Below the pieces are notes generated by a model that was not told the origin of the DNA, ran no database searches, and saw only the letters and a program-made list of their open reading frames with translations. Positions 11,276-62,712 of a stretch of DNA of 64,000 nt are shown here, one piece after another. Made by a program: the position numbers and the translations under genes. Source of the stretch: Bugula neritina (taxonomy: Eukaryota > Animalia > Bryozoa); contig OZ037765.1 in assembly GCA_964035545.1 (NCBI GenBank), forward strand, positions 32,983,504 to 33,047,503. The letters run 5' to 3'. Numbering within the stretch: position 1 is the first letter of the stretch; each line of letters opens with the position of its first letter.

Positions 11276-14200
11276 ATGCGTTCAGGTATGTAGTATGTCA
11301 GTTTGTGATATTTTCAATCCTCTCAGATATATCCGTATGCTCTTTCTCTTGGCTTATGAAATCATCAAATGACTTATTAATGTAGAAAATACAACACTTG
11401 TCACAATCACTAACTTTAAACAATATGTTTAACATCTTTCAGTTGTAAATGTACACCTTTAGACTATTCTAAATTATGTATTATTAGATAATGTAAAAAG
11501 TTTATATACAATCAACTCTAATAATTTGTGCAGTTATACACAGGACAGTTAAGGGCATCCTTACTAAAAATATTATAAATTTAGCTCACAATGTAGTCTA
11601 GATTCTTGCTATAATTTTGTTCTGTGGGTGGCATGCGTGTTGCCTGCCTGTGTATGTTTAGCCTGATATTAGACTATGACCGATAAACAGCAAGCTCAAT
11701 TAGGGCTGCATTATAAATCAACATTCCATTGTGGCTACTAAGTAAATGAATTACACACCAAGCTATTCACTAGCTTGTAGGCTAGCAGGTCTGTAATTAT
11801 TAATGGACAAGCCAATATCTTCTCATCTCTACGCGTTCACTGAAGCGTGAGGTGATGCGCAGTGCTTGTTAGTAAAGAAAAATTATCTCAATTTCAGGGT
11901 ATAAATCACTAATTTATAGAAAATCTATAAAAGCTATTAGAAACATTACAAAAACCGCGCTGCAGAAATATCTCAGGATTCCAACAGTGTTTTCTTTTTT
12001 CAGATATTATGTTTTCCTCCTGAGATATTTTACTGGGACTGACATGATGTTTTTTCAGCTAAAAATAGGAGAAAATGGGTAGTTTTTTGTCTGTAGCTCA
12101 GCCAAAAAACGGAAAATTAAAAATTCCAAAAAACCGCGCTGAGGAAGAAAGCTATCTACAACATAATTTTTAAATTTTGATTCTAGCACAATTAGGTAAG
12201 ATTCTATTTTACTGGGACTGATTTCTTATATGATAACAATGCATCATCAGCATAGCAGCTAGAACTAAAAGGTTGCCCTTAACTATCCTGTGTACTGTGA
12301 GAAAAATTTGACTAAGAATAGTGTAGCCAGTAGCCACATGTTTGTATCATAATCATTATAAATCATATAGTTATATAGATAATTTAAATAGTCATCACTG
12401 TACTTAAAAACATTTACAATGGTTGCTTGTTGAAAATGCCAGTCATGGGTACAGTGCTGACTGTTTTATTCTTTTGATGTCTATTTAACAAGCAATTATT
12501 AGTGGATTTGATTTTATCTTCAAATTATTTTAATCAATCACTGCCATTTGTCAAACAGGAAGTGACTATCTTTTTCAAAAACAGAATAATAATTGATCAG
12601 CTAAAACATCAAGTAAAGGTAACTCCAAGTTTACATAAACTGTGTAAATATTACAACACTGACCATTATGAGTTTATCACAGACTGGATTAAAGTATACT
12701 TTGTATTAATGACTTTTAATACATACTCTATATATCAGGCAATGAACTCTTTTAACTTATAATTGTAAGAAGTAGTTAATAACTATTGCAGCAATCAACA
12801 GGGTTTGACAATTATTCAGAGATCGCTAAAATGTTTATATGTGAAGTAGAATACACTGTGAACCATCTATATCTATTTAACCTGCATTAACTGGCATGTG
12901 ATAAAGTTGTGGTAGAAAGAAAGGGTAGCCACATATTTATAATATTATTATAAGAATCAGTTACAGTATCTGTATAGTAATAATACTATCTCTGTGTTGT
13001 TACAGAGAGTTTCAGAATCTGGTTCAGACATTCTGGACAGGATCCTGTAGACTTGGAAGATGTACGCAAAGCTACAACCAAATCATATACTTTGAGTGAA
13101 GTGAAGACTCAAGTTGGGAGTTGTCAACTCACTCACCTCAAGTTAGAGAAGACAATTCCTAAGAATATAGGAGATATTGCTTCTCATGCTGTTTGTTTGG
13201 TACTTCGTAATATAACTCACAAAGGGAGTCTGAATAAGTGAGTATTTAGTTGAGTATATCTGAGTCAACTCCTACAATTCTATGATATGATTTATATATG
13301 AATTTGTTGAGGAGTTTATAGTAGACATATATTATGTGTCACTATACTGTTACACTATACAGCACTACTGTAATCTACATGCTGTTTCTTTATACTACAG
13401 TCTGGGTCAGCTGACTCAGTTAGAAATACTAGACATAAGAGGGACTACTCTCAACACAGTACCAAATATTGTGTCATCACTCACATCACTTAAACAGTTG
13501 GATATGAATTACTGTGGTATATCCTGTCTACCTGAGAGGTTTGTGTGTCACACATTTATCTCGAATGACCATGAGTGGAATTATTAGGTCTCGTGAAGCA
13601 TTCATGAGTGATAAAAACATTTTTAATTTTTACGCAAAAATCCAGTGTATTTGCCATATTTATAGGTGCTATTAAGCCATCACTTTATCTGGGATATAAC
13701 TTTGACAAATAATCAATAATATTATATTTGTAAAATATGAGTGGTGGTCACATGCATATCTCTGTGCTGCACAAAATACATGTGATTTAGCATCACAAAA
13801 CAGGGATGTATATAGAATTTTGAAACTTAGCTATTACTATGGAGTGATAGTGTAGCGGTTGTTTGTATATTAAAGTGCTGATGGTACTTTATTGGAGCCG
13901 TAAGTCTCTACTGATGTCATAAGGCAATGTGAAAACTATAATAGTAATGTATAGAACAACATGTTTGTAAAAATATGCAAAGGTGTAGTATAATAAGTCA
14001 CCAAGTTATTGTCAAACAATAAAGATTTCATATTCTATTAAAATGCAGAGATATTAGTAATTATTAGGAATAACTATATCACCTGATTGGCCCTACTAGT
14101 TCTATAAAACGGCTGCACTGGTCATGGCTCTAGCACTTGACCTACCGTGACTAGGCCAAGTCTAGAACAAACACATGTGCAGCCTACAAGGTTTTTTTAT

Positions 14201-60641: not shown

Positions 60642-62712
60642 GTGTACAGAATGAGTGAGACTGTAAGAGGGAGAGCTCTGATTATCAACAACAACACTTT
60701 CTCTGAATCCTCTCAGCTTCATAGAAAGGGTTCCCTGAAAGATGTGTCCAATATTCGGACAATTTTGGCACTTCTGGACTTTGAGGTAGATGTGAGACAT
60801 GACAGAACCGCTGAGGTGACTAAATACCTTTATTTTATTTTCTGTAACTCACAGATCTACAAATAGAATTATATTATATGAAAATTATGTGTTGTTTATA
60901 GGAGATGCTGAAAGATATCAAAGAAGAAACTCAACAACCAGACAATGAAGACTATGGTATGCATGTCACTGTACTCATGTCTCATGGTGGAACATTTGGT
61001 GCTCACGGAATTCTCTACGGAACTGATGAGAAACCGGTCAAGCTCACAGAAATCTTTGATCTGTTGTCTTCTAAAAACTTCAAGCACATGGCTGGTAAAC
61101 CCAAAGTGGTGATTGTGGTGGCTTGTAGAAGTGGTGAGTAGAGTTTTTACTTATTCCTGCTTTACAAGCTCTTTTGAATCTGTTGTGTGTTTTACTCTCT
61201 AACTCATTGTTACTAAAGGAGGATAGAGACTTTCAGCATTTTTCTCATACATGGTAAAGCATTCTATTAACAGAACATCCCTTTGACTTTTGGATTACTA
61301 AATCTGAAATCTGACTGAATCTAAATAAATTTTTTTTGAACGGATGCTTTTGAATTTTAAAAATATGTCTGACATTTGTAAGTTGTAGCACTTACAGTAT
61401 GTTGTAGCCTGTATTTTATACTGTTTACAAATGAACTTTTAAACTGGAGTTTGGGGGTCACTAAATCGCAGCTAGACTATACATCTATCTAGCATAGAAC
61501 AATGTGCGTACAGGAAGTAATTTGATATCTTTGATTTTTTTGTTTCTCTCTTTCTCCATTTCTTCTGCTAATCAAGAAAAGCGAAACTGTAAGATATCAA
61601 TTGTTTTAGTTGTAAATTGGTACCTGTTATAGTTGAAACAGATGACATAATGGAGAGAGTAGCTACTGAGACCAGAGACAGCTCAGGTCAACAGGAAGTT
61701 GAAACAAGTCAGCAAACTGAAAGTAGACCAAGGAACCTGGATGTTGACGATCTGTTGATACTTCAATCTTGTTTTGATGGTAAGTTGCTGCCTAAATGTA
61801 TTTGATTGCAACCCATTTTTCTCAATCTGTTTTTTAACGTTTATTTGTGAAATTAAAGTAAATTGATGTTAAAAATTTAAGTGTAATTTGGGAACTTTAG
61901 CTATATTGATTACTTTGGCTTTTTATGTGGTTATTAGCTAAAAAAATAAACTTTGCTTCTTTATCTAAAATTCTTTTACAGCTGTTGGACTATTTTTCAT
62001 ATTCTATTACCCGAGTTCATCTTCAGTGCTCCTAGTGTCTCTCTGTTTTCTCTGACTTGTGTCACTAGCTGGCGGAACTCATATTTACTGTCAAACATGT
62101 TGAAACTCAAGAACTAAAAATAACAGAACTTTAGTTTTATAGAAATAATATAATGAAGTATTCTCTCCTATTTCAGCTACTCTCAGCTTTGTTCAGATAT
62201 GTTTCATATATACCACGTGTTGTACATTTAGGTAGAAGCTCCATACGTCACTCAAACTACGGGACTCCATTCATCAGAGAGCTGGTCAAAACTCTGTACA
62301 AACACTCTTCTCACACAGATCTTGCTACTCTGTTTTATCTGGTGAGTGTTTTATACTCTCTTATTGTTCAACTCATCATCACTCCATGAAACTACATAAA
62401 GCTCGTCTATACAGCTGTGATACAAATGATTGCTACAACAAACTACACTCTTTGTATCTCAATAAACAGCACAATGTCTCAACAAATAACACTTTCCAAC
62501 TTGCTCTGAAATGCTCTGCAGTGACTCATAGCTCTAGTCTGAAAGATATCACATTGCAGGTACAAGACAGAGTCAGAAAAGTGACAAGAAAGCTTGCTGG
62601 GACAGAGAGAAATGTTGAGAAGCAGACACCAATGGTATTCAGCACTCTCACTAACATGAGAAAGGTTTTACTGTTTCCCAAATACAAGATCTCTCCTCAG
62701 TTTGAGATCTGA
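60642..62712 (+). CDS. Gene B caspase domain exons
   Basis: RGRALIINN, RKGSLKD, LMSHG, GKPKVVIVVACRS (Cys at 61124), DLLILQS, SIR, GTPFI, QTP..STLT..KVLLFP. Confidence 0.9.

Follow-up and report, generated by a model that had tools for sequence, protein, structure and literature searches.

The window analyzed here, the whole 64,000-nucleotide stretch of the Bugula neritina genome (assembly GCA_964035545.1, contig OZ037765.1, positions 32,983,504 to 33,047,503), contains two tandem genes on the + strand, each comprising 16 coding exons with identical phases. Copy 1 (11276..34050) is intact over 1,377 codons in a frame and splice-site check, with the LRR array, Roc-COR, linker, and caspase following one another in its frame, and AG/GT ends are found at every internal intron of both copies. 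The predicted start lies in an inferred first coding exon (11276..11285; ATG plus 7 nt, a block kept in copy 2), followed by an N-terminal cap exon (13006..13237), which gave no match in the Pfam scan and a weak match to Watersipora P0022. Six LRR cassette exons (13401..26195), each of 138 nt, phase 2-2, and encoding two 23-residue LRRs, are located at 13401-13538, 16437-16574, 17105-17242, 23274-23411, 23783-23920, and 26058-26195. The large exon (27230..29277), delineated by Pfam, a fold model, Foldseek, and motifs, encodes the last LRRs, Roc, COR-A/COR-B, and a Cys-rich tail. Linker exon 1 (29442..29519; 78 nt) is a predicted helix with an exon of equal size in Watersipora, and linker exon 2 (30484..30626; 143 nt) is acidic, predicted to be disordered, and contains DAD/S, a candidate processing site. 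Caspase exon 1 (31082..31255; PF00656, RNA junctions) carries an S1 Arg in KRTGS, and exon 2 (31814..32045; RNA junction) carries the catalytic His (SHG) and Cys (LACRN). Caspase exons 3 to 5 (32572..34050), defined by the frame check and matches to Watersipora fusions, comprise the intersubunit linker (exon 3, 32572-32700), exon 4 (33327-33436), and exon 5 with the stop (33901-34050). Pfam searches, run exon by exon, match Roc, COR-A, LRR, and Peptidase_C14.

Copy 2 (46127..62712, + strand), from its predicted start at 46127, repeats the arrangement of 16 exons and is interrupted by a single in-frame stop. Its six LRR cassettes (46974..55103) are located at 46974-47111, 48409-48546, 51165-51302, 52340-52477, 53173-53310, and 54963-55103, the last being 141 nt, and the LRR-Roc-COR exon (56799..58798) and five caspase exons (60642..62712) were identified by Pfam and the frame check. 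The linker exons are 58960-59037 (78 nt) and 59319-59461 (143 nt), and the caspase exons are 60642-60815, 60902-61133 (with SHG and VACRS), 61633-61779, 62232-62341, and 62560-62712. The preliminary description, which had reported identical exon phases and 78-nt and 143-nt linkers leading into five caspase exons in both copies, was borne out by the frame and splice-site check; its view that both copies are in frame holds for copy 1, whereas copy 2 carries a premature TAG in Roc (57307-57309, codon 528) just after G3, at a position that is Gln in 33 of 51 family members. The truncation precedes G4, and an X was placed at the stop codon in the joined translation of copy 2. Unless the TAG is a base error, the sequence points to either a null allele or a young pseudogene. 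Nested host retrotransposons are also present.

The reading of the locus as a single-chain gene was evaluated against public RNA contigs and relatives. The contigs skip introns 29277/29442, 29519/30484, 30626/31082, and 31255/31814 at the predicted sites, so that the first three junctions, singled out earlier for verification, are indeed spliced; contigs with COR-linker-caspase junctions come from up to four studies, and LRR-to-LRR joints are also found. The contigs come largely from paralogs or alleles, because they are mostly 82-95% alike, and none singly spans Roc to caspase; for the LRR6-to-Roc junction, RNA gave an approximate paralog-type join (26202/27316) versus the predicted 26195/27230. 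Mere adjacency of a caspase gene to a ROCO gene that terminates at 29312 would agree with the stop reached at 29312 when the large exon is read through its donor, and with database models that are ROCO-only or caspase-only, such as Watersipora models without the caspase and others with the caspase only. Against this stand the contigs that join exons across each of the three linker introns, the absence of a start before the caspase exon, and the same fusion in Watersipora, about 30% identical and with its introns at matching positions. The separate-genes reading is largely refuted by the junction contigs and conserved introns, and its probability is very small. The LRR-Roc-COR-caspase fusion is real, and splicing into a single chain, as originally proposed, agrees with the full-length public relatives. 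Expression was seen in several studies without selection for infection.

The Roc-COR module of copy 1 has intact G motifs (G1 GQTMSGKT, G2 Thr, G3 DFGG, and G4 THLD) that are near-invariant across the family, and COR comes immediately after Roc on the same chain, as in ROCO proteins. Pfam detects Roc with an E of 1e-4, which does not reach the curated cut-off, and COR-A with an E of 3e-11. The model of the large exon (pLDDT 85.9) matches LRRK1, C. tepidum Roco, and LRRK2 in Foldseek over approximately 660 columns including COR-B, and the full-length fold match to LRRK1 and C. tepidum Roco has an E of 1e-19 to 1e-21; all fold models are monomers. The module is MFHAS1/LRRK-like. A NACHT or NB-ARC ATPase is absent according to Pfam and the fold match, and the switch is a Roc GTPase.

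The caspase comprises Peptidase_C14 p20 and p10, is closest to animal caspases, and has CED-3 and caspase-3 as its best PDB matches. SHG and xACR align with the caspase-3 His and Cys, respectively, so that the His/Cys dyad is present, and both S1 Arg are kept. The Gln of QACRG is replaced by Leu in copy 1 (LACRN) and Val in copy 2 (VACRS), the last Gly is Asn and Ser, respectively, and the canonical Arg/Gln/Arg S1 pocket (QACxG) is not found; Watersipora relatives keep QAC. Because the S1-pocket Gln is Leu or Val, cleavage specificity may differ and Asp specificity should not be assumed, and LACRN/VACRS could mean low activity. Between copies 1 and 2, dN/dS is 0.26 for Roc, 0.35 for COR, 0.25 for p20, and 0.36 for p10, and both Roc-COR and caspase are under purifying selection. 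Pfam scans of full-length relatives and a linker model of one relative revealed no CARD or DED before the caspase, in agreement with the earlier proposal that no death-fold adaptor is present; a hidden CARD/DED was sought in the linker, which instead consists of one helix and a disordered acidic stretch in the modeled relative, where the caspase hangs on a disordered tether.

The LRR concave face is hypervariable, with a dN of 0.49 versus 0.10 elsewhere. The dN/dS of face positions, calculated from pairs that are not independent, is 1.07 on their own dS and 2.3 on pooled dS (CI 1.3-3.9), which suggests positive selection. The family is large and fast-turning, and includes pseudogenised copies.

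We consider it somewhat probable that the family comprises lineage-expanded, adaptor-free intracellular receptor-proteases of cheilostome bryozoans, in which, by analogy with Roco proteins, a Roc-COR monomer-dimer cycle would gate a tethered caspase, with copy 2 a recently inactivated member of a family evolving by birth and death. It is plausible that the protein serves as a receptor in immunity or cell death. The LRRs would bind a ligand, microbial or from damaged or foreign self, and the bound ligand would shift the Roc-COR nucleotide cycle towards a COR-COR dimer. In C. tepidum Roco, the GTP-bound protein is monomeric, and dimers form with GDP or without nucleotide (PMC5714945); by analogy, the dimer would be the GDP or nucleotide-free state, and GTP would keep the protein monomeric and off. 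Activation by GTP-driven dimerization may therefore run the opposite way, judging from this best-studied Roco (PMC5714945). The dimer would join two tethered caspase domains for induced-proximity activation as in caspase-8/9, the caspases would self-process in their acidic linkers, and the active caspase would cleave substrates of cell death or inflammation. With another residue in place of the QACRG Gln, as in the precedent of Dronc, cleavage might follow Glu in addition to Asp.

Other functions were weighed against this gated receptor-protease. The zooids of bryozoans pass through cycles of regression and regeneration, and their colonies fuse with or reject one another; a non-immune control of programmed turnover of tissue or of allorecognition between colonies (e.g., polypide regression or colony fusion) through self ligands would fit this biology and the expression in studies not selected for infection, but the large fast-turning family, variable LRR faces, and pseudogenised copies fit host-pathogen conflict better, and this role is improbable. 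Caspases need dimerization for activity, and monomerization alone therefore cannot activate them, which weighs against a switch of opposite sense, in which a resting GDP dimer holds the caspases non-productive until a ligand prompts GTP loading and the protein becomes monomeric, opens, or assembles into a higher-order or membrane cluster, which frees the caspase; furthermore, no oligomerization surface was identified. The resting form of C. tepidum Roco is a dimer that GTP converts to monomers (PMC5714945), and a long flexible tether implies that a resting dimer would need restraint; this switch, although unlikely, is the most credible of the alternatives. Finally, a weak or specificity-shifted caspase might serve as bait or scaffold, i.e., an integrated decoy that attracts the caspase inhibitors or proteases of pathogens, while Roc-COR signals to another partner, as LACRN/VACRS, the faster divergence of the caspase than of Roc-COR between copies (66% vs. 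83% identity), and the free swapping of C-terminal domains in amphioxus might indicate. The retained catalytic His, Cys, and S1 arginines, the QAC of Watersipora relatives, purifying selection on p20 and p10, and the activity of Dronc without the Gln (PMC2180229) render the decoy slightly less credible still than the non-immune role.

Full-length relatives were found in the bryozoan Watersipora, with the same intron positions, and in amphioxus. The amphioxus (Branchiostoma) models, e.g., BRAFLDRAFT_67388, are filed as MFHAS1 or SHOC2 homologs and share the same architecture in multi-copy tandem clusters; their LRR-Roc-COR is encoded in one 1,038-codon exon, whereas bryozoan LRRs lie in cassettes, and Death, GT4, and OTU effectors occur in the amphioxus family as well. 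Bryozoan Roc-COR forms its own clade in a Roc tree that lacks a verified bacterial COR-caspase protein and leaves out seven proteins missed by the P-loop pattern, including P0041. Bryozoan and amphioxus Roc-COR as one clade was rejected (p-AU 0.010) in a quick LG+G4 tree whose bryozoan branch is long, and this rejection of a single origin is therefore to be read with caution, whereas the caspase, in a quick tree likewise without a verified bacterial COR-caspase protein, does not reject it (p-AU 0.19). The two fusions probably arose independently, as judged from these trees. Contaminating bacterial DNA and horizontal transfer of the gene as a whole were rejected in view of the introns, nested host retrotransposons, and animal-type caspase.

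Bacterial LRR+AP-GTPase+COR+caspase proteins have been listed as predicted counter-invader systems (Kaur et al., 2021; PMC8195603). The preliminary description knew of no characterized animal protein of this architecture; the architecture already exists elsewhere, given this bacterial list and the amphioxus and Watersipora models in public databases, but the animal version was not found described in any paper. Zmasek 2007 and the 2019 Roco review do not mention an animal ROCO-caspase, and an earlier mention is possible in Huang 2008 (amphioxus immune genes) or subscription papers, e.g., Marin's Roco surveys. If the gene works as inferred, it represents an adaptor-free animal equivalent of the inflammasome/apoptosome whose switch is a GTPase instead of an ATPase and which apparently was invented anew in bacteria, amphioxus, and bryozoans. 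Self-cleavage would provide the LRRK2 field with a direct, irreversible readout of the long-debated nucleotide and oligomeric state in which Roc-COR is on. Bryozoans are colonial animals hosting defensive bacterial symbionts, and the family offers an entry to their almost unstudied innate immunity. Chances are about even that bryozoans and, separately, amphioxus possess a third kind of intracellular death receptor besides NLR/Apaf-1 platforms, i.e., a large one-chain family in which a Roco GTPase cycle would directly activate a caspase and cassette LRR exons would yield a shuffled or alternatively spliced recognition repertoire.

Among known systems, the likewise uncharacterised bacterial proteins (e.g., OQX07365.1) have the identical domain order, variable LRRs, AP-GTPase, COR, and a C-terminal effector, whereas the bryozoan gene is intron-rich and its caspase animal-type. 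Brown-algal LRR-ROCO candidate immune receptors, in a paper that does not mention a caspase, share phase-2 LRR cassettes upstream of Roc-COR, which are under diversifying selection, and a variable concave face, although their exons are 72-nt single-repeat rather than 138-nt double-repeat units (PMC11378527). MFHAS1/MASL1, LRRK1/2, and C. tepidum Roco share the LRR-Roc-COR core, fold, and G motifs; by contrast, the bryozoan proteins have no kinase, WD40, or death domain, have a caspase output, and form a large family rather than being single-copy. Initiator caspases (caspase-1, -2, -8, -9, and Dronc) share the long N-terminal region, caspase fold, His/Cys dyad, and acidic intersubunit linker, and the S1 Gln is replaced as in Dronc. 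In contrast to NLR, Apaf-1, and DISC platforms, with their CARD/DED, separate adaptor, and STAND ATPase, the bryozoan protein combines sensor, switch, and protease in one chain.

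The AT-rich animal DNA of the window carries two tandem plus-strand genes amid retrotransposons. Both were rebuilt from splice sites, with frames verified by script, and each comprises 16 coding exons with AG/GT at the intron ends and phases identical between copies: an inferred start exon (10 nt), a cap exon (232 nt), six LRR cassette exons (phase 2-2; 138 nt, one of 141), a large exon (2.0 kb) encoding Roc and COR together with the final LRRs, two linker exons (78 and 143 nt), and five exons for the caspase. The linker and caspase exons and shared phases of the preliminary description are thereby borne out; its reading of both copies as in frame holds for copy 1 (11276-34050), uninterrupted over 1,377 codons, but overlooked a single TAG in copy 2 (46127-62712) at 57307-57309 (codon 528), immediately past the G3 motif, at a codon that specifies Gln in most of the family. 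On sequence grounds, copy 2 is either a null of recent origin or the product of a base error, because the TAG is its sole lesion and purifying selection relative to copy 1 is still visible (dN/dS: Roc 0.26, COR 0.35, p20 0.25, p10 0.36; upper bounds all <0.65). Conserved upstream blocks with splice-like signals (10213-10415, 11153-11312, 45463-45667, and 46000-46163) are probably 5′ UTR exons.

Fifteen public runs contain the sequence or its relatives, and four runs from four studies were aligned to 26053-32050. In three, depth is high on exons and near zero on repeat-free intron bins, as expected for RNA. The three proposed junctions between COR, linkers, and caspase were all found in RNA contigs: 29277/29442 is skipped with exact GT..AG in one run and near-exactly in two others, 29519/30484 in two runs, and 30626/31082 in all four, exactly or a few bases off. 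Contigs from three runs also skip 31255/31814, and LRR-to-LRR joints are present. The junction contigs are short and mainly represent paralogs or alleles, since they are mostly 82-95% alike; among the four runs over 26053-32050, no contig spans Roc to caspase, and the exact 26195/27230 joint (LRR6 to Roc exon) is absent from the listed joints. Read depth is also high at intronic 29600-30350 and 31370-31640, which are likely dispersed repeats; 31372-31638 is found again at 53735-53993.

Spliced models were searched one exon at a time, with the copy-2 stop as X in joined translations, and Pfam matched Roc, COR-A, LRR, and Peptidase_C14 in single exons. Modelled with AlphaFold (pLDDT 85.9), the copy-1 Roc-COR exon aligns structurally with LRRK1, C. 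tepidum Roco, and LRRK2 along ~660 columns (E 1e-21 to 1e-14), and both COR subdomains are therefore present; for a relative, MFHAS1 is the closest Atlas cluster. Copy 1 retains G1-G4 intact, and these motifs are nearly invariant across 51 relatives. Past COR, a Cys/His-rich tail near-invariant in the family (29130-29277; CPHC ... C ... C) is possibly a zinc site. In the caspase, SHG and the catalytic Cys align in register with caspase-3 and both S1 arginines are retained, while the QACRG motif is replaced by LACRN (copy 1) or VACRS (copy 2); likewise lacking the Gln, Dronc cuts after both Glu and Asp (PMC2180229). In the predicted model of a Watersipora relative, the caspase hangs on a single helix plus an acidic, disordered segment, and this tether contains no death fold, in agreement with the earlier statement that no CARD/DED precedes the caspase. 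Candidate acidic processing sites lie ahead of the caspase (DAD/S) and between its subunits (QD/G or RD/S).

The dS between copies rises from 0.2-0.37 as far as the linkers to 0.7-0.8 in the caspase. This suggests that paralogs have recombined or converted one another, a mosaic history in which recombination would have reassorted sensor-switch and protease halves. Synonymous divergence of the caspase exons (31082-34050 versus 60642-62712) is 2-3 times that of LRR-Roc-COR. Across the 12 LRR cassettes, concave-face positions vary on a constant scaffold (dN 0.49 versus 0.10), and their dN/dS, 1.07 with local and 2.3 with pooled dS, suggests diversifying selection. Cassette intron flanks (e.g., 23258-23516 versus 48394-48650) are 78-88% alike within copies, between copies, and at the B. 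neritina locus L001, an indication that cassette exons were repeatedly duplicated or converted. A Gypsy-type LTR retrotransposon (2342-8846), whose gag (2563-3522, CCHC) and pol (3390-8186) frames are open, is a young insertion with 191-nt direct repeats 99% identical (2342-2532 and 8656-8846) and GC of ~0.56 versus 0.32 in its surroundings. A second (36850-41780; ORF 37401-41474, 1,358 codons; 172-nt repeats 99% identical) is nested between the copies in a LINE-like RT region (35866-36981, resuming near 41744), and decayed BEL/Pao-like pieces (DUF1759) with another RT fragment occupy the copy-1 intron between LRR exons 3 and 4 (19809-22914).

Against the whole protein library, the Roc-COR exon retrieved 88 proteins at E < 1e-30, several of which are long and run on into a caspase matching the window caspase exons. 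Fused relatives are RefSeq models of Watersipora subatra, labelled "MFHAS1 homolog" or "uncharacterized", and a B. neritina model with 79% identity; a B. neritina contig is 70-88% identical to the window over exons and several introns, which makes Bugula or a close relative the most likely source of the window. At ~30% identity, Watersipora shares intron positions from the COR end through the caspase, including the 26-codon linker exon. The L001 paralog (GCA_010799875.2, 12340-14570) has several frameshifts within caspase exons, reflecting either a pseudogene or draft-assembly errors. Amphioxus species have at least 11 LRR-Roc-COR-caspase models, in a Roco family (L003 and others) where one exon encodes LRR-Roc-COR and the C-termini are swappable (caspase, Death, GT4 glycosyltransferase, OTU). 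The fused caspases fall into two separate groups, one bryozoan and one amphioxus, with 100% support each, and a joint caspase clade is not rejected (p-AU 0.19). A joint Roc-COR clade is rejected (p-AU 0.010) in quick trees with a long bryozoan branch. Independent origins of the two fusions appear likelier.

One message encodes a variable LRR face, intact and constrained GTPase and protease motifs, and a flexible tether, with the adaptor domain absent. Dimerisation switches on initiator caspases. Ligand at the LRRs would shift the protein into a COR dimer, thereby pairing two caspases, which would self-process at acidic linker sites (DAD/S, QD/G, or RD/S) and lead to death or inflammation; we consider this sequence of events somewhat more probable than its alternatives together. 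In the C. tepidum Roc-COR cycle, the GDP-bound or empty form is a dimer and the GTP-bound form a monomer (PMC5714945). A switch running in the opposite direction to that proposed for the receptor is unlikely. Use of the receptor in development or allorecognition is quite improbable, as is, by a slightly greater degree, a caspase acting as a decoy or scaffold, to be weighed beside a retained catalytic Cys and a replaced Gln. An artefactual fusion, set beside the spliced contigs, is scarcely credible.

The novelty raised initially as a possibility stands in part: an animal ROCO-caspase is not described in the literature searched, whose coverage leaves older key papers outside, but in bacteria, proteins that combine variable LRRs with AP-GTPase (Roc) and COR, and end in one of at least 24 effectors, caspase among them, are predicted counter-invader systems (Kaur et al., 2021; PMC8195603), and the amphioxus effector swaps closely parallel their range. 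Brown-algal ROCOs with phase-2 LRR cassette exons are proposed immune receptors (PMC11378527), and ROCO-TIR fusions occur in Aplysia (PMC9334734). The fusion protein is a ROCO by membership; it resembles animal caspases in fold and His/Cys dyad, although the canonical S1 Gln is replaced in the window copies, and it belongs neither to NLRs nor to CARD/DED caspases, but probably works like them.
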